A DNA stretch of 63,822 nucleotides, counting the filler, from Octopus bimaculoides (taxonomy: Eukaryota): NCBI RefSeq assembly GCF_001194135.2. It is 5 parts of 5 records of this genome, joined end to end, with 100 filler letters (N's around TTAATTAATTAA, not from the genome) between each part and the next. Parts side by side here need not be neighbours in the genome. Positions count along the whole stretch, not along the records: positions 24,430 to 52,494 come from NC_068989.1; 4 more parts are not named here. The stretch is one strand, 5' to 3'. The position numbers and the translations under genes are program-made. Of this stretch, positions 26,145 through 52,400 are shown in pieces. The stretch's first letter is position 1, and every line of letters starts with the position of its first letter. The notes under the pieces were generated by a model that searched no databases, was not told the origin of the DNA, and saw only the letters and a program-made list of their open reading frames with translations.

Positions 26145-26212
26145 CTAGCTCCAGCTAACCGTCCGTATATTAAGCTTACAAAAATGTATGCTGAGTATAT
26201 GTTTTGTGTTAC

Positions 26213-26307
26213 CTTTTGGTAAATGCCATCCTGGAGCGTCCTTTGACATTGCCCATAATATTTGGTATTCGCCATTTCCACAAACGTAGTTTTGTTGACC
26301 GCATTCC
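26213..26307 (-). CDS. PHM-like exon A5 (95 nt, phase 2 to 1)
   Basis: ttctcttatag acceptor, gtaaca donor; (W)ECGQQNYVCGNGEYQILWAMSKDAPGWHLPK. Confidence 0.9.
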
Positions 26308-29300
26308 CTATAAGAGAAACAATATTTTTCAAACTTACTGAACCCTCGAAGAACCGAATCTAAAGCCTGGTTTCTATTTTTACTTGAATCGAAATCCTTT
26401 CTAACGTCGCTGATGACCAAATATAAGTGTGTCAATATCTTTTTCTTTTATTACCTGAAAATTATATCGCATAGTACCTAATCAATCTGAATTAATATAG
26501 TGAAAATATATTGTCAAATTAGGACGAACGACGGAGAGCAAAATAGTACCATCCAGCTACCAGACAGCTAAGTAAAATTTTTATGCATGATGAAACAGTT
26601 CACAAATGCCTGAATTTGCAGTTCCCAATCCCTTATTTAAAATGAAGGGCCCTTGTGACTTGACAGAATAAAACCGTAATCTACTTTTATGAAGTATAAA
26701 ATAAGCTCCAAGATAACAGAGTCTAAGGCTCAGTTGTAACTGTTCCTTTTCACTTACATCACTAATGCTTTATGAAGGGGAAATCACAAATTCATAATCA
26801 GTAACTCCAAAAATATCAAGTTTTCTCTACCTAAAAAAAGCAATGGAATATAGCATCTGTAAAACCTTTCATAGACGCTATAGCAGAGACATAAACGCAT
26901 TAGTTCATTCATTATTGCATTGATTTATTTTGCAAGATATAAGATAGTTATATATTTTTTAAGAAGTGGAAATTGGACGCAGAAACCAACGTACCTATAT
27001 ATTATTGGCAGTGTAGAATATATGGAATGATTTTAACGAATTATGTCTTGCTGGTTAATAACCTCTTGCTTCACACCAGTCAATAGATTTAAAACAATGT
27101 TATCACACAGTTAGTATGCTAGGATATTACCCGCATAAAAACTGTATTATTTTAATGCTGAATGTAACAAGCGATAAAATTTTTGTTATGGCGGATGCTT
27201 CCTTAAAGTATAGTTAATTCCTGTTTAGTAAGAAAAGAGCCAAACATGTTGGGTTTGATGTAATGAAACTGAAAGATCACAGGGCTGGAACGATCTTCGA
27301 GGCGTAAATGAATGGCAGGTCTGCAACCCTTAACCTTCTGGAAGATGATATAAACTCCCTGACCGACAATATCAAGGAATCACTTCAGGAGATAGCTAGA
27401 AATGCTTGGGAGAAGGAAAACGAAACCATATGTCACTGATGACATTTTAGACCTATGTGATTTAAGACGAAACCTAAGAAAGACCAAGTTAACGGGTAAG
27501 GGAGGCAAGTCAGAAATATAATGTTTTGAATAGGAAGATTGGAAAGAAAATGAAGGAAGCCAAAGAAGAATGGATAGCAGAACAGTGTAAAGTCATCTAA
27601 TCTGGGATAAGGAAGGACTACGTCAAGGATGCTCATGAAACCCTCAAAATTCTAAAGAAACAAAGAAACACACCACAACTATCACTGAGGACAAAACAGA
27701 CCTGCTCCTCATGGATGAGAATGATTTCATCAAGAGATGGTTGGTATATTGCAAAGACTTTTACAATCACAAACTCAAACATAAAGGGCAACATCCCAGA
27801 AAATTACAACAACAGTAACAAAACTTTAGGACACTTCAATTCTTCAGGAAGAAATCGAAAAAGTAGTGTGCATGCTCAGGGATTGGAAATATCTAGGAGT
27901 GGATAGTATCCCATCAGAGATTCTAAAACATGGAGAGCCAAAGATTATCAATGCGCTAACAGTTACCTGTAAAAAGATATGGTAGACGAAGCAGTTACCA
28001 AAGGAATGGACCCAATCACTGATGATACTGATTCCCAAGAATGACAGCACAAGACTAGCAGAATTATAGAACAATCAGCCTAATTAGCTATCCTAACAAA
28101 TTATTGCTTAGAGTCCTGCTAAACAGACTTAGGGGGAAGGCAGGGAAAATCCTTGCAGAAAAACAGGCTGGGTTTAGGCCCAAAAGGAGTAACATCAAGC
28201 AGATATGTCACAGACTTCTCACTGAGAAACACCTGCAGCACCAACCTGACCTTTATTACAAACGCATTGATTTCAAAAAGGTCTTTTGCCGTGTTTGGCA
28301 CGATGAGGTGTGGCAGAAGATGAAGAATTACAATTTCGACAATAACCTTATCAAAGTAACCCAAGCACTACATGAAAACTCAAGCAGTGCAGTTTTCCTG
28401 AACAACATCGAAGAATTCTTCAAGACAACAATGGATGTTTGACAAAAGTGTCTCCTGTCTCGAGCGCTTTTCAACATCTTCCTGCAAGGGACAATTCAAG
28501 GCCTCCACCCTTCTGAGGGACAGCCCATTTCTGATCTGTGCTTTGCTAATGATATTGGCCTGATAGGAAGCAGTGAAGCAGAACGACTGGAGCTCACCAC
28601 TAGACTGAAAAAAGTATCGGGGGCATACGGGATGGAGATCAACGCCAAAAAGAGTAAGATCCTGGTTAATAATGACAATCAAAAGATAGAAACCAACATA
28701 GGGCTGAATAAGAAAGACTTGACGAAGTGTACACCGTCAAGTACTTAGGATCCACTTTGACCGAGAACGGCAGATCTCGATAAGAAATAAACAAAATTCA
28801 ATTTAGCCTCTGCTGCCTCGAAGAAGCTGAATACCATAGGGGAAAAAACAATTCCATTAGTCGCTGGTGACTTCGATCGTTTTGTATGGCTGATAGAGCT
28901 AGATTCTTACAGCTAATATCGAGCGATGAATCTAGGGATTTGAGTACAAGTGCCATAGATGGCTGCTACACATCTCGTGCACAGAACACAAAACGAATAG
29001 CTTCATCAAACAGCAAGTTCTCAAACACACTGGCAGACAGAAACCACTTCTTGCACAGATAAAAAGAAAGCTTACCTAGTACGGTCATGCATCTCGCCAC
29101 AATTCTCTGTCCAAAACCATTCTTCAAGGCACAGTTGAAGGAGGGTGAAAGAGAGGTAGGCAGGGAAAATCCTGGTTTGACAACATCAAGTACCAGACAG
29201 GTCACAACACTGTGAACCTGCTACACATGATAGAGAACAGAGATCAATAGCGATGACTGACTACAAAAGCGTCTAGAGTAGCACCCCAACGACTGGTTGC

Positions 29301-37149: not shown

Positions 37150-38400
37150 GCCCTGTCGATTCAATGCTGGGGGATCATTTCAAAGGGCGCGAAATTTCCA
37201 CATAAAGCGGGACAAGGATGTGTTTCCCTGTCCTTACATCTGAGGTAAAGCACATCCTTGTACACTCTCCCTTGAAGATACTAGCCTTCATGCCCCTGTA
37301 TTGCCTCGTGGTGTCATCGTGAGGGTGACTCTGGAGTCTATAACCCTTGAGTGACAGGATCCTCCCATAGGGCTGCTGGTAGAGTCTCAGAAGTTGCAGG
37401 TTGGGCTGGAGGTTGTGAATGTCTGCTTGCATCTATTGTAGCCTGCGATATTAGATGCAATGTTGTGTAAACAAGCGTTGTTAGCCTTGCTATTGAATGG
37501 GTTAAAAAGCTCATAGTACTTGTGACTTCTGGGGAAATGCTTGCTTCTTGATCAACGACAGGAAGCTCCTAACTCTTTTGGTTGAAACTTCTAGGTTAAA
37601 TGGGTGGGGTTGAAATAGATTCGCTTTCTCTTTTTGGTTTTCTTTGGAATCGGGGTGGGGTTAGGTGGGGTGTCCTCCATATACGTCGAATTGTCGATGA
37701 ATCCGCTCCTCATTAACGACTCGTTGTAATGGGGGCGGCTCTATTGAATATCTCACTATCCGCTAAAAGTTTGGTGATTCTTCTTTGGTGCCTGAAACTA
37801 TGGTTCTAGTTACAGCGTGAGTGGTTGGGTCGAGTTTCAGTGGATATACACAGTTTCCTTACTGTGCTTCTTGTAAGAGTAGTACTTGCTCGTTTTCAGG
37901 TCTAGGGTTAGGCCCAGGTAGTTAACGGTTGTCAAATTAGTGGTAGCTGTTATGGATAAGCCGAAATTTTTCAAGATCTGTATCAAGTCCTTTCGCAACT
38001 TGTCCATAGCGTGGCCGTTCATATGGCTTGAGACTGCCAGGCTATCATCCCTATACAGGACTGAGCCATGAAGGTGAGTGCATTTTCTAAGGGTATCCAA
38101 AATAAATAACCCGACGAGGTCAGCGATCTCGGTCCCGTCGTAGCCCCCCGCTGGTATGTCGAGCAGTCGATCGCCTTGTTTCTTCACCCAGGTGGTATCA
38201 TCATGAACCAAGATTGGCCTCCTAACATTCATGTTGATTCTGACATTGAGGTCGCTTATATTGGTGAATTGCCTGACAAAATCTAAGGTCTTCGGGACTA
38301 GAGGCTTTGATATTAAATAGTAGAAATTCACGACGTTGAACTGAGGGAATTTGCAGACTGCTTCATTCTAGATGTCAGTCGATCACTGGAATCCCACTGG
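37150..38400 (-). mobile_element. Penelope-like element: RT plus linker/GIY-YIG region, degenerate
   Basis: DIPAGGYDGTEIADLVGLFIL, LYRDDSL, VNYLGLTLDL; downstream KHFPRSHKYYELFN and QYRGM segments. Confidence 0.85.
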
Positions 38401-40283: not shown

Positions 40284-40781
40284 TGTAAAGTGCCGAAACT
40301 TTGCTTCAATTCTTGAACCTTCCACTTCGCCGATTTTCTTCAAACAAGGTAGAAAAGTTGTTTTCTCTATTTTCAGATCATAGTTTGCAACTTCAGCAAT
40401 GTTTACTACTGATATTCTGAATGTTGTCTCGCATTTTTAACATTATAATGAATACTTGATTTTATATGTTACACTTGAATCTTTACATCTATTGCATAAG
40501 GTGGGATGTCTTCGTGAAAGAGGCATTCGTTCCGTTTTAGCAATCGTGTCACTGAGCTTGTTTGTTGTATTTTCAGCTATAGATTCAACAGCCTCAGTTA
40601 GTAACCTGGTAAAGAATTTTCTTTCTGATAATATTGCCATGTTGTAAAAGTAAATTACTAATCGAAATACATGAACATTTTCTAACGTCTATTCATTATA
40701 TATTGGCCCTAAATACATGATCATACAGCTGAAAGTAATTCCCTTTGTCTATAGAGGTTTATTTCTTGATTGCAGGCAAAC

Positions 40782-40827
40782 ATGCAGAAGTATTTGATTC
40801 TAGCCTGCTGCTTCCTCATTTTCAATG
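40782..40827 (+). CDS. Signal-peptide exon (MQKYLILACCFLIFN, phase 1)
   Basis: Strong acceptor 6 nt upstream of the ATG, strong donor gtgagt; basic n-region and hydrophobic h-region. Confidence 0.8.
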
Positions 40828-41277
40828 GTGAGTTAAAATCTTCATCAAAATATGATGAAAATTCATTCTTTAATATTTTTCTCGTTAGATTAGCGCATAT
40901 ATAATGTAGTGAAAGTAAGTGGCGTGTTGAATTATTGTTAGTTATGAAATTTTTAATATAATTGGAACAAGGCTTTTCACTTCAGATTCTTCTGTACATC
41001 CTTGACAATTTACATGCATCCTGCTTAATTAGTAAGGTTTGTTGGCTGTAAGCCCAGTTTCAGAAAGTGTAAATATTGAGGAATATGTTAGTTCCCAGAT
41101 ACGAACGATAACCTAATGTTAATTTTGCACACTGAGGGATTTCAAGTAAAACACTACAACTATTATACTACACTCATTAAGCGCTGAGGTAAACTTACGT
41201 ATTTAATGGTTACAAACTCTCATAACGGTGCTGGTGGTGAGAGGTGAACAATAAAGCTGCCATCTGGCATTCTTTTA

Positions 41278-41465
41278 TTCTTTTATTTGTTTCAGTCATT
41301 TGACTGCAGCCATGCTGGAGCACCACCTTTTAGTCGAAGAAATCGACCCTAGGACTTAATCTTTGTAAGCCTGGTATTTATTCTGTCGTGTCTCTTTGCC
41401 GAACCGCTAAGTTATGGGGACATAAACACATCAACATCTGTTGTCAAGCGATGGTGTAGGGGGAC
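41278..41465 (-). mobile_element. SINE family S2, 3' part
   Basis: ttcagtcatttgactgcagccatgctggagcacc...gccgaaccgctaagttatgggg; also present at 60548-60730 and 63620-63815. Confidence 0.85.
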
Positions 41466-41816
41466 AAACACACACACACACACACATGCATATATATATA
41501 TATATATATATATANNNNNNNNNNNNNNNNNNNNNNNNNNNNNNNNNNNNNNNNNNNNNNNNNNNNNNNNNNNNNNNNNNNNNNNNNNNNNNNNNNNNNN
41601 NNNNNNNNNNNNNNNNNNNNNNNNNNNNNNNNNNNNNNNNNNNNNNNNNNNNNNNNNNNNNNNNNNNNNNNNNNNNNNNNNNNNNNNNNNNNNNNNNNNN
41701 NNNNNNNNNNNNNNNNNNNNNNNNNNNNNNNNNNGCGCCATATCAAATTTTATGAAAATAGATTTTTCACAGTGGGATTGATTATGAATTCAGAATTGCT
41801 TGAGAATTCTGAAACG

Positions 41817-42050
41817 TTCTGAGCTGGCAGAAACGTTAGCGCGCCGAGCGAAATGCTTCGCGGTATTTCGTCTGCTGTTACGTTCTGAGTTCAAATTCCG
41901 CCGAGGTCGACATTGCCTTTCATCCTTTCGGTGTCGAGAAATAAAGTACTATTTATGCACTGGGGTCGATGTAATCGACTTAATGCCTTTGTCTGTCCTT
42001 GTTTGTCCCCTCTGTGTTTAGCCCCTTGTGGGCAATAAATAAATAAGAAT
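41817..42050 (+). mobile_element. SINE family S1, near full length, in the precursor gene intron
   Basis: Head, body and aataaat tail match the other S1 copies. Confidence 0.85.
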
Positions 42051-42201
42051 TGCTTGGGAATTTTTTTACTAAAATTTCAAGAGACTTGTAGTGGTTTGTA
42101 TAATCCAGCATTCTATTTATCTACAGTGCATAAAATATATAAATTTTAATCTTCCTATCAATTTTATATATCTAAACAGGTATTTATTTTTTTCTTTATA
42201 G

Positions 42202-42716
42202 CACGAAGATCTCAAGTATACAGTATAGCCTATCGCATGGATGACAGAAAATATGACCCGATTAGCGATTATATAAGTATCATACCCGATGACAAGATTA
42301 TACAAGCAGATGCCATCTATAAAAGATCAATGGAAATGAATGGCATAGATATGGGCCGGAGATCTGATATAGCTAATATACCAGCAGATGCCTACAATAA
42401 AAGATCATCAGAAATTAATGGCATAGATATGGGCCGGAGATCTAATATAGCTAATATACCAGCAGATGCCTACAATAAAAGATCATCAGAAATTAATGGC
42501 ATAGATATGGGCCGGAGATCTGATATAGCTAATATACCAGCAGATGCCTACAATAAAAGATCATCAGAAATTAATGGCATGAATATGGCCCGGAGATCCT
42601 ATATGATGAGGATAGCAGGACGGAATATGAATATACAATCCATGAATAGAATGAGAGATATTCCCTATCGTTCAGACGATATTTATATAATGCCAGCAAT
42701 AAAAGATGAAGCCTGA
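42202..42716 (+). CDS. Multi-copy peptide precursor exon (prohormone-like, with KR/RR sites and G-RR amidation signals)
   Basis: Acceptor tttttctttatag, in frame with the signal exon, giving 186 aa. It has a 78-bp (26-aa) tandem unit, SSEINGIDMGRRSDIANIPADAYNKR, about 3.4 times. AATAAA at 43160. Confidence 0.85.
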
Positions 42717-43452
42717 TGATAATGTCTATTGATACGAGGCATGCATCTTTGTGAATGATATTCTATGTCTACTATCAATACATCTCCCCTATAGATTTCC
42801 GTCAATGACAAATAACAGATTAGTGCATACAATATAACAAACAAATCATTTGTTCAAAAATAACCTTTTTGTTGAAGTACCAAAGTAAACTTTTTCTTTT
42901 TTTAATTTGCTAAGATATCTCTGCATAGCAATCAAGTATTTTTCAACTATGTTGGTTTCTCACATTATCACAAAATCTACAAATGATGAGAAGAGAAGGA
43001 AATGTGAATATTTCTTTCAACCAAGATTAAATCTCTGATTGCCTGGAGATTGCGTCTATATATCAATATGCTAACAAAAATCTATTCAAATATTTGATTT
43101 TATGTGATTTCTTAAACTAGTTTTATACAAAAATTCGTTTATAGTGGATATATTTGTTTAATAAAACACTTCTTTAATGCGCTTTTAATGTTGCGTTGTT
43201 CTTCATTTGCCTGTTTATACTTTTTATGAAGTCAAACAATATTAGAATGGTTTAGCTATCATGTTCAGGAGTACACATTGTTAAGGTTTATATCCCGACA
43301 TCACATTCGTCAAAAAGATGTCTTTGTAAACAATATCTGAAATATCATAAATTGATGTTGACACGATATAAGAGAAAAGATATCACTCAGCTTATTATGA
43401 AACGATTTCTTAAATTATGGCAGTATTAGAAATGAGTATTATTTTCTAACAG

Positions 43453-49412: not shown

Positions 49413-52400
49413 CAGGTGGGTACCGTTAATCGAAAAGTTAACTTCGTTAATCATCAATTCTTTGGAAATGTAACGGAAGTTAACGTTAATCCGTTAATGT
49501 TAACTTTCATTGGAAAAGGCATATCTGCAGTTTAATACCCCACTGAAATTTGTTGCCTCATAACTTCCAGAAAAATGGATACTTGTTAATGAAACTTTCA
49601 CCAAATAATCGTTTATATCCTGNNNNNNNNNNNNNNNNNNNNNNNNNNNNNNNNNNNNNNNNNNNNNNNNNNNNNNNNNNNNNNNNNNNNNNNNNNNNNN
49701 NNNNNNNNNNNNNNNNNNNNNNNNNNNNNNNNNNNNNNNNNNNNNNNNNNNNNNNNNNNNNNNNNNNNNNNNNNNNNNNNNNNNNNNNNNNNNNNNNNNN
49801 NNNNNNNNNNNNNNNNNNNNNNNNNNNNNNNNNNNNNNNNNNNNNNNNNNNNNNNNNNNNNNNNNNNNNNNNNNNNNNNNNNNNNNNNNNNNNNNNNNNN
49901 NNNNNNNNNCGTTTGACGGGGATTTTTTCCGGTGTTTTTCACCAAAGTCTTCAGAATGATGGGAAGCATCTTTTCTCGAAAAAAACGAAAAAAGTTTTGG
50001 AAATTTTTTTCCATTCCCTCACCACCCCAGTCCAAAACTATCTGTTGGCCATTTTTGTCTTTTCACTACTAACTTAAAACCCGTGGGAGAAACATAAGTT
50101 CAGCGGAAAAGTTCAGAGGATTTAAGGGAGATCTGACTGCTGTTTCTAACACATCCCAAAACCTCCCTCCTCGGTTCTTTCTCACTCACACATCTATTGA
50201 TATTTTTCAATATTTTTCTCCCCATAAACAAATTTTATGGAATAATGATGTCAAAGTAACACACTTGTAGTCCCAACTGAGTGAGGCCATGTTATGTGTG
50301 TGTAAGAAAAAAAACACACCCCAAAACATCTTTAGTGTTCATATTAATCTGTCAAATGTAATACTTATTTGTTTACGTTATTTGAATTACTCAGGTTTAT
50401 TTGCTCGTAACTTTGTAACATTTTACATACAGATTTGAAATTTTGTCAGTGGGTGCTTTATACACCACTAGTTTATTATGTAATTTTAGCTAATCTTGCT
50501 GAGTAAATTTGAGTTTTATGGGCAGGTAAATTTAATTAACAGGTGTAAAAGCAATAACATTATGGATAAACACTAAAATTGAAATTCTTAATGCATCTTA
50601 CCTGTTTGATTTGTTACTAAAATTATCGCAGATGACAACCGACAAAAATTTTGCCACTCTTCAAGATGAGGTACTTCAATTTTAATTAATTAAAATACAG
50701 GTATAATCGGTACAAGATTTTATTCTTTCGGTAAATATTTCGTACCTCGGTGTGGAATAATTTTTTCCACAGTTTTTTTTTTCTTTTTTTTCGGGTGCAT
50801 TCANNNNNNNNNNNNNNNNNNNNNNNNNNNNNNNNNNNNNNNNNNNNNNNNNNNNNNNNNNNNNNNNNNNNNNNNNNNNNNNNNNNNNNNNNNNNNNNNN
50901 NNNNNNNNNNNNNNNNNNNNNNNNNNNNNNNNNNNNNNNNNNNNNNNNNNNNNNNNNNNNNNNNNNNNNNNNNNNNNNNNNNNNNNNNNNNNNNNNNNNN
51001 NNNNNNNNNNNNNNNNNNNNNNNNNNNNNNNNNNNNNNNNNNNNNNNNNNNNNNNNNNNNNNNNNNNNNNNNNNNNNNNNNNNNNNNNNNNNNNNNNNNN
51101 NNNNNNNNNNNNNNNNNNNNNNNNNNNNNNNNNNNNNNNNNNNNNNNNNNNNNNNNNNNNNNNNNNNNNNNNNNNNNNNNNNNNNNNNNNNNNNNNNNNN
51201 NNNNNNNNNNNNNNNNNNNNNNNNNNNNNNNNNNNNNNNNNNNNNNNNNNNNNNNNNNNNNNNNNNNNNNNNNNNNNNNNNNNNNNNNNNNNNNNNNNNN
51301 NNNNNNNNNNNNNNNNNNNNNNNNNNNNNNNNNNNNNNNNNNNNNNNNNNNNNNNNNNNNNNNNNNNNNNNNNNNNNNNNNNNNNNNNNNNNNNNNNNNN
51401 NNNNNNNNNNNNNNNNNNNNNNNNNNNNNNNNNNNNNNNNNNNNNNNNNNNNNNNNNNNNNNNNNNNNNNNNNNNNNNNNNNNNNNNNNNNNNNNNNNNN
51501 NNNNNNNNNNNNNNNNNNNNNNNNNNNNNNNNNNNNNNNNNNNNNNNNNNNNNNNNNNNNNNNNNNNNNNNNTTTTTGCCAAGAGTAAAAAATTGCTGAT
51601 TTTATGGTTTTAAATTTCAAAGAGCGGACTGATTTCATAGTATTGGCCCATTTTTTAAGGTTTTTAAAGGCTTTTAGAGCCAGAAAAGGGGGGGGGGACC
51701 TCAAATGAAACACAATATTAGTGTTAAACTAGAAAAGGTTTATTGATACAGTGGCCGTAAAAGAAAAAAATTAAATTTAAAAAATGAAAAACACGATATA
51801 TACATAACTTAATTTTTCCTCTTCTCCATTTTGTTGATGAGATTCATGTTGCCCTTCATGAAAATTAACATACTAAAATTTTCATCAGACATAGACGATC
51901 TCTTGACACTTAATATGTTCTTGGCCATGGAATATAAACGTTCAATTGCAGCACTGTAAGTAAATCTTTGGAGAAGGCAGCAGCTGTCAATAGATCTTTG
52001 GAGTGGGTCTCCAACCAGGTCTTTCCTAAATTCTGGGCCTTGTCCTTCAGTAACCTGTGGCTTCCGCTCTCATTTTGTTGGGTGACACCGCTGAAGTAGT
52101 CATCTTCCACGTCTTCGTTGTTGCTGCCTCCACTGTTGCTGCTCACTTCCTTAGACTGCTACCTCATGGCCTCCTCGACCTTATCCGCCATGTTTCTCCT
52201 CACCTTGGTGAACTTGGTGCTATCATATCTATCCAACCAGATAAGGCGAAACCTGGGGTGGAAGGCAGCAGCCAGCTGGCATTCCTCATCGTCCAGGAAG
52301 GTCGCAAATCTTTTGTCGATGCCTGCCAAAACTGCGTCGACCAAGGGGCTGCAGCAGAAGAGTTTTGGATTAACGGACTTGAGTTAACGGAAGCAAATGT

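Follow-up and report, generated by a model that had tools for sequence, protein, structure and literature searches.

Does locus LOC128248729 of Octopus bimaculoides encode a precursor of secreted peptides and, if it does, which peptides would be its products? The window, by which we mean the whole stretch of DNA that was analysed (63,822 nucleotides, five parts of the genome joined end to end), carries this gene in a 28-kb piece from chromosome CM046609.1 (GCA_001194135.2), at ~59.3 Mb. An initial annotation had read it as a spliced, two-exon gene for an unrecognised multi-copy prohormone-like precursor of 186 residues, in which amidated and non-amidated peptides alternate. The reading that we favour, with a probability of roughly 0.6, is that of a lineage-restricted, fast-evolving secretory peptide precursor whose conserved product would be an acidic peptide that ends in ...IPADAYN and carries no amide.

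The two-exon model was reproduced. Exon 1 (ATG...AAT G) supplies 46 coding bases and is followed directly by the donor GTGAGT, the acceptor immediately 5' of exon 2 (tttttctttatAG) comprises a polypyrimidine tract and then AG, and both splice sites are canonical (GT donor, AG acceptor). The spliced coding sequence of 561 nt is in frame, with 186 codons and a stop, and its product is 100% identical over the full length to the RefSeq entry "uncharacterized protein LOC128248729 [Octopus bimaculoides]". No stop-free stretch of the 28-kb piece is longer than the one that holds exon 2; it runs to 188 codons from stop to stop in DNA of 36% G+C. The exon junction, FLIFN/A[RG]RSQ, is common to three separate gene models, those of O. 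bimaculoides, Octopus sinensis and Octopus vulgaris, and all three database entries are computer predictions. We infer that the TATA-like element 5' of the ATG is part of the proximal promoter. Judged from its sequence, LOC128248729 is a genuine protein-coding gene, confined to Octopus within public data.

When 5.8 billion proteins were searched by word index, first with the sequence and then with a three-sequence profile, only the query and two relatives came back, O. sinensis LOC115216622 (238 residues, P0002) and a hypothetical protein of O. vulgaris (150 residues, P0003). The same three Octopus proteins came out of an exhaustive HMMER profile search across 1.84 billion cluster representatives; such database searches are blind to genes that share only the 16-residue signal. 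The weak profile matches ranked below them (E 1e-7 to 6e-4) were polyubiquitins and were set aside as spurious repeat matches. Neither the O. vulgaris protein nor the exon-2-only open reading frame (ORF) led to any contig in exact-sequence look-ups. The peptide strings and both LOC identifiers yielded nothing relevant in the literature main texts searched, and the peptides and the gene are absent from the searched supplements of a catalogue of molluscan prohormones (PMC6425005) and of an O. vulgaris brain atlas (PMC9712504). Broader literature searches on neuropeptides of octopuses gave no mention of the gene either. No Pfam family passes its threshold, the best being a chance match to UPF0262 (E 0.12, 12.8 bits against a cut-off of 25). 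Reflectin, considered because the composition of the precursor is Met/Asn/Asp/Tyr/Arg-rich, gave no Pfam match at E up to 10 and none in the profile search, and the reflectin criterion of lacking a signal peptide is contradicted by a signal-like N-terminus. The tachykinin signature FXGLM-NH2 is absent, the predicted C-termini being ...E-I-N-G-I-D-M-NH2 and ...E-M-N-G-I-D-M-NH2. No orcokinin or pedal peptide precursor is present among the sequence and profile matches, and the orcokinin DSI or NFDEIDR-type motif is absent from SDIANIPADAYN and SSEINGIDM. The absence of any Pfam domain, the two sole relatives and the lack of a literature match support the initial statement that these peptides belong to no known family; as far as public data reach, the family would be confined to the genus Octopus and unnamed.

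The N-terminus has the layout of a signal peptide, with a short, positively charged n-region MQK and an h-region YLILACCFLIF, then NA/RR; the h-region falls short of the length of a membrane anchor. Residues 4-14 have a mean Kyte-Doolittle hydropathy of 2.86, against a maximum of 0.72 for 11-residue windows of the remaining sequence, and the N-terminal helix, with a predicted local distance difference test (pLDDT) score of ~70, is the only such part of the AlphaFold2 model (mean pLDDT 42.6, predicted template modelling score 0.14). Hydropathy and the modelled helix are consistent with the signal peptide that had been proposed. The remainder of the protein is hydrophilic and acidic, with a calculated isoelectric point (pI) of ~4 and no Cys in the mature part; its composition is repetitive and of low complexity. 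Ile, Ala and Lys are abundant in the protein. According to the structural model there is no folded domain outside the peptides. The in-silico criteria applied to molluscan proneuropeptides are a signal peptide, no folded domain and repeated cleavage motifs (PMC6425005), and the features seen or predicted in the O. bimaculoides precursor correspond to them.

Exon 2 carries an array of tandem 78-bp (26-codon) units (Table 1). In-frame units of the form KRS-x7-G-RR-S[D/N]IANIPADAYN start at 42321, 42399 and 42477, and a decayed fourth begins at 42555. Units 1-3 read KRS-xExNGIDMG-RR-S[D/N]IANIPADAYN and differ from one another at 1-5 nt; unit 4 differs from the others at 22-26 nt, and in it the Gly codon GGC has become GCC (Ala), giving A-RR instead of G-RR. 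Gly directly precedes RR at residues 67-69, 93-95 and 119-121, i.e., in three consecutive units. We infer amidation of the Gly-extended peptides from this G-RR context alone. The calculated [M+H]+ values are 1263.585 for SDIANIPADAYN, 1262.601 for SNIANIPADAYN, 964.440 for SSEINGIDM-NH2 and 1026.405 for SMEMNGIDM-NH2.

The O. bimaculoides protein has 10 dibasic sites, 9 of them followed by Ser, and every one of the 9 [KR][KR] pairs of the mature part directly precedes Ser. Only 64 of 20000 shuffled sequences reach as many dibasic sites, and none of 20000 reaches the nine occurrences of [KR][KR]S, a figure that overstates the significance, given that the repeat units are not independent. Every peptide listed in the initial annotation occurs in the product, the alternation of dibasic-flanked Gly-extended and non-extended peptides is present in the O. 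bimaculoides sequence, the last repeat does lack the amide-donor Gly, and the near-identity of units 1-3, with the 3.8 copies detected, supports a recent expansion. The sequence of one further proposed product, SYMMRIA-NH2, is also present; its release would depend on one monobasic site, and the relatives have none corresponding to it.

Comparison between Octopus species indicates which of these predicted peptides has been retained. Identity to O. sinensis is 90.4% in the 600 nt upstream, 46/46 nt in exon 1 for both O. sinensis copies of the gene, 89.3% in the 5' and 93.6% in the 3' part of the intron, and 93.7% in the 800 nt downstream, and it falls to ~60% in exon 2 in a global alignment; a local blastn alignment of exon 2 together with 156 nt of well-conserved intron gives 73.8%. 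When O. bimaculoides is aligned with both O. sinensis copies, mean column identity over the ~220 nt around exon 1 (40660-40880) is 98%, and the TATA-like element does not vary. Exon 2 aligns convincingly to O. sinensis only at its first 17 nt, at a KYDxIxDY stretch and at the blocks encoding IPADAYNKRS (30-35 nt, 81-89% identity), and the C-terminal tail has no convincing alignment to the O. sinensis tail. A gap-tolerant alignment of exon 2 reached 86% identity and was discarded as uninformative, the same value being obtained with shuffled sequence; an apparent frame shift in the C-terminal tail rests on the same type of alignment and is not claimed. A Nei-Gojobori ratio of nonsynonymous to synonymous divergence (dN/dS) of 0.55 between O. 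bimaculoides and O. sinensis was likewise not used. Its dS of 0.74 is far above the intron divergence of ~0.1, which implies that the aligned codons are not consistently orthologous.

The signal peptide is kept at 16/16 positions in all three species, and the motif IP[AP]DAYN-KR-S is kept with little or no variation. At the place of SSEINGIDM-G-RR in O. bimaculoides, both O. sinensis and O. vulgaris carry ...DII-G-K. Since IP[AP]DAYN-KR-S is kept in three species and the Gly-extended peptides are not, it is the acidic, non-amidated peptide that stands as the conserved candidate, and ...IPADAYN, being conserved, is probably the functional product. The initial emphasis on the amidated peptides has therefore been shifted, SSEINGIDM-G not being conserved in either relative; the architecture and the novelty that had been claimed stand, and the stress now lies on ...IPADAYN.

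The units themselves turn over. Exon 2 differs in length by 156 nt between O. bimaculoides and O. sinensis, which equals two 78-nt units exactly, and the O. sinensis array has a period of 72 bp. Open frames of 171-223 codons are nonetheless kept in exon 2 in both species although most of the exon is unalignable. In O. sinensis the gene is present twice in tandem, at a distance of 8.85 kb (L002 1154-4582 and 10001-17063; CM016868.1 ~5.59-5.61 Mb), with introns of 2.7 and 6.3 kb; one gene copy is found in the O. bimaculoides piece. The two O. sinensis copies are identical over the 717 coding nt and the last 162 intron bases, and their flanks differ by 1-5%, a pattern suggestive of gene conversion, of a duplication of very recent date or of the double assembly of one haplotype. 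In the O. vulgaris protein P0003, a proline-rich IPPNIPIRPNIPIHPNIPIRP block without cleavage sites replaces the middle repeat units, and what P0003 matches best in the O. sinensis loci is the gene of P0002 itself, at only ~37% identity. O. vulgaris and O. sinensis are very close species. P0003 is either a paralog in its own right or the product of a gene that changes at an extreme pace. Taken together, the alignments suggest that the signal, the promoter and one motif are held fixed and that the surrounding repeat units are replaced quickly; the divergence may reflect diversifying selection or neutral birth-and-death of units.

For a secretory peptide precursor with this conservation pattern, the following processing would be expected. 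The 16-residue N-terminus would target the protein to the endoplasmic reticulum and then be removed, subtilisin-like prohormone convertases would cut after the KR and RR pairs in the secretory pathway, and a carboxypeptidase would remove the basic residues. The products would be three copies of the acidic 12-mer S[D/N]IANIPADAYN, three Gly-extended 9-mers convertible by amidating enzymes into SMEMNGIDM-NH2 and SSEINGIDM-NH2 (two copies), and N- and C-terminal pieces. The Gly-extended peptides would be species-specific companions, carried by 78-bp units that expand, contract and are replaced fast. "Neuropeptide" may be one of several uses of such a precursor.

Several observations weigh against this reading. 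The likeliest signal cleavage, F14-N15-A16/R17, puts a Phe at -3, which is unusual. Dibasic sites number 10 in O. bimaculoides, 7 in O. sinensis and 4 in O. vulgaris, and they are not enriched over shuffles in the two relatives (2614/20000 and 6202/20000, respectively), so that the prohormone look is strongest in the very species in which it was noticed; in place of the internal G-RR, moreover, the relatives show only G-K or G-KK. Bioactive neuropeptides are normally much better conserved between congeners. No transcript-derived protein copy was present in the collection searched, which says little, as near-identical 78-bp repeats would break short-read assemblies. The O. sinensis gene identifier is absent from the supplements of an atlas of the O. 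vulgaris paralarval brain (PMC9712504).

Known precursors offer likenesses of architecture. Like the multi-copy molluscan proneuropeptides (FMRFamide, myomodulin, buccalin, pedal peptide), LOC128248729 combines a predicted signal peptide, no folded domain and tandem peptides between KR or RR sites, with a Gly amide donor in some copies, one large exon and unit duplication; unlike them it has no sequence relation to these families, is found in Octopus only, whereas they span Mollusca or beyond, and is poorly conserved even between congeners. The Sepia officinalis FLGamide/So-orcokinin B precursor carries amidated and non-amidated copies verified by mass spectrometry (PMC9410093). It resembles the octopus gene in its mixed peptides, one of them in many copies, and in a copy number that differs from one form to another (PMC9410093). 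The two differ in that the Sepia peptides are detected by mass spectrometry, expressed in the central nervous system and have orthologs in Octopus and Loligo, whereas the predicted peptides of O. bimaculoides have no motif in common with them and gave no ortholog beyond Octopus.

A real precursor could also release exocrine or external products, in saliva, venom, skin mucus or a reproductive secretion, acting as pheromones or in gamete recognition or defence and evolving fast under diversifying selection. This alternative differs from the favoured reading only in the site at which the peptides act, and we hold it to be the most serious contender while still thinking it unlikely. Conotoxins, amphibian skin peptides and reproductive proteins are familiar cases of a fixed signal joined to a variable mature region, and the identical signal exon, the flanks at 89-94% and the mostly unalignable mature region reproduce it here. 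The likeness to conotoxin-type superfamilies, with their invariant signal, conserved non-coding flanks and hypervariable mature region, concerns the evolutionary pattern only; the cysteine framework of conotoxins is absent, and part of the divergence may be repeat turnover. Gene copy number also varies, from one in O. bimaculoides to two in tandem in O. sinensis, and the absence of the gene identifier from the marker lists of the paralarval brain atlas (PMC9712504) is a further, weak point for an exocrine role. Octopuses do deliver amidated peptides, eledoisin and OctTK-I and II, from the posterior salivary gland (PMC6880623), and these tachykinins are an exocrine precedent for short octopod Met-amide peptides such as those predicted here, which end in ...INGIDM-NH2, without FXGLM-NH2. 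A mature part that lacks Cys and is acidic (pI ~4) is unlike most toxins and antimicrobial peptides, and the excess divergence may stem from repeat-unit turnover, not selection. Octopus salivary tachykinin precursors are not known to carry more than a single copy each.

The protein might instead be secreted and remain uncleaved, as a small, disordered, repetitive component of extracellular material (mucus, egg coat or cuticle lining) in which the dibasic pairs are incidental. The lack of a predicted fold and the repetitive, low-complexity composition would suit such a role, as would dibasic sites at chance level in the O. sinensis and O. vulgaris relatives and the proline-rich IPPNIPIRPNIPIHPNIPIRP block of O. 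vulgaris, which has no cleavage sites. However, the sole motif kept in three species ends in KR-S and includes the cleavage site, the nine mature [KR][KR] pairs all stand before Ser, and the Gly directly before RR in three units would have no obvious purpose in a matrix protein. We consider an uncleaved matrix protein improbable, and the secretory peptide precursor remains the reading that we prefer.

The surroundings of the gene bear on whether it is a gene at all. The gene table places a minus-strand gene over both ends of the segment 30782-52494 (L001 1-21935), with a 314-residue product containing PF01082 and PF03712, the domains of copper type II monooxygenases, the family of the peptide-amidating enzyme PHM and of dopamine beta-hydroxylase. 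A Pfam scan of all minus-strand ORFs of at least 35 residues revealed no exon of this monooxygenase gene in the 28-kb piece. As the host gene spans the locus and has no exon in the piece, the precursor appears to be nested in an intron of the host, on the opposite strand. The gene table of the O. sinensis locus lists no such spanning gene. If the host is an amidating enzyme, its pairing with a nested peptide precursor would be a curious one. The minus-strand ORF 26148-26447 was considered as a monooxygenase exon for its likeness to PHM and rejected, having no match to a PDB chain or in Pfam; a database search with this 100-codon open stretch gave one relative only, a protein of 56 residues (P0008; 73% identical) encoded on a Logan contig of 1.1 kb.

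Elsewhere the piece consists of transposon debris and microsatellites. An ORF at 28104-28442 (plus strand) is reverse-transcriptase-like by eye (QAGFRPKRS...), a 176-codon ORF at 37840-38367 (minus strand) has a YRDD motif and no Pfam match, and a weak match to the hAT dimerisation domain at ~51812-52069 (minus strand; E 0.0014) lies below the Pfam cut-off.

A position wholly inside the intron of a minus-strand gene, amid transposon remains, together with the lack of a transcript-derived protein and the predicted status of all three database entries, could mean that an open frame running through a tandem repeat in another gene's intron was caught by gene predictors and has no function. The two-exon structure, the splice sites, the signal exon and a promoter-proximal conservation above background are nevertheless common across species, open frames are kept despite massive divergence and length differences, and the O. 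sinensis copies have no difference in 717 coding nt against 1-5% in their flanks. A non-functional frame is thus a very remote prospect in our view. Least credible of all is membership, at great divergence, of a known family. SDIANIPADAYN is loosely orcokinin-like as an acidic, unamidated 12-mer in several copies between KR sites and SSEINGIDM-NH2 shares a terminal Met-amide with the octopus salivary tachykinins, but no orcokinin, pedal peptide or tachykinin precursor emerged from the profile search of 1.84 billion cluster representatives, FXGLM-NH2 (PMC6880623) and the orcokinin DSI/NFDEIDR motifs are missing, and the cephalopod orcokinin genes are separately known (PMC9410093).

The intron contains an assembly gap of 220 N (Table 1), which no reading frame crosses; the exon-1 frame meets a stop at 40902-40904, and the exon-2 open frame starts only 3' of the gap. 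Continuity across the gap was assessed by alignment to the gap-free O. sinensis loci (L002, CM016868.1). The left flank, up to 41486, aligns with L002 up to 3447 in copy 1 and 15929 in copy 2, and the right flank, from 41737, aligns from 3695 and 16175, respectively, leaving 246-248 bp between the aligned flanks in O. sinensis versus ~250 bp in O. bimaculoides. The O. sinensis DNA that matches the gap is an (AC)n(AT)n microsatellite with the tail of a dispersed repeat and contains no exon. Collinear flanks and a matching span made of repeat indicate that the gap is an uncrossed repeat of approximately the stated size, with no hidden exon. An element at 41270-41514 with an (AC)n(AT)n tail adjoins the gap, has at least five occurrences in L002 and probably caused the gap. 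A second dispersed repeat in the intron, at 41821-42045, is absent from that position in O. sinensis and occurs in reverse orientation at L002 8777-9001 (88% identity).

Table 1. Features of LOC128248729 and of its predicted products, in positions of the window.
Feature	Position	Strand	Remarks
TATA-like element CATTATATATTGG	40694-40706	+	~80 nt 5' of ATG; TATATA at 40697
Coding exon 1	40782-40827	+	MQKYLILACCFLIFN and first base of codon 16; predicted signal peptide; donor GTGAGT
Intron, phase 1	40828-42201	+	repeat elements, (AC)n(AT)n microsatellite, assembly gap 41515-41734
Coding exon 2	42202-42716	+	residues 16-186 and stop TGA (42714-42716)
Tandem array, 78-bp (26-codon) units	42299-42598	+	Tandem Repeats Finder: 3.8 copies, 94% matches
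Predicted Gly-extended SMEMNGIDM-G	42327-42356	+	G-RR context
Predicted peptide SDIANIPADAYN, copy 1	42363-42398	+	in-silico cleavage; conserved module of the family
Predicted Gly-extended SSEINGIDM-G	42405-42434, 42483-42512	+	G-RR context
Further predicted copies of the acidic 12-mer	SNIANIPADAYN 42441-42476; SDIANIPADAYN 42519-42554	+	in-silico cleavage
SSEINGMNMA, without Gly	42561-42590	+	unit 4
C-terminal tail SYMMRIAGRNMNIQSMNRMRDIPYRSDDIYIMPAIKDEA	42597-42713	+	one monobasic G-R, no dibasic site
Candidate poly(A) signals	ATTAAA 43026, AATAAA 43160 (span 43026-43165)	+	pattern search

Catalogues of cephalopod peptides are mostly built by homology, so that lineage-restricted precursors are missed. 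What is new here is an unnamed precursor of a well-known kind of gene, already held in RefSeq as the uncharacterized locus LOC128248729. If its peptides are real, they would add a family to the signalling or secretion repertoire of octopuses, and the gene would be a tractable case of the gain, loss and replacement of tandem units around a fixed export signal and one fixed motif. If the gene is silent or its product uncleaved, it would serve as a warning against prohormone calls made from architecture alone. A more far-reaching proposal, which we regard as speculative and rather doubtful, is that of a new signalling-peptide family of Octopus or of octopods, with ...IPADAYN as the ligand, born inside an intron of a copper-monooxygenase-family gene and diversifying by turnover of 72-78-bp units with species-specific amidated companions. 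Were this true, the locus would offer a rare chance to follow a peptide-signal gene, and eventually its receptor, arising within one genus.

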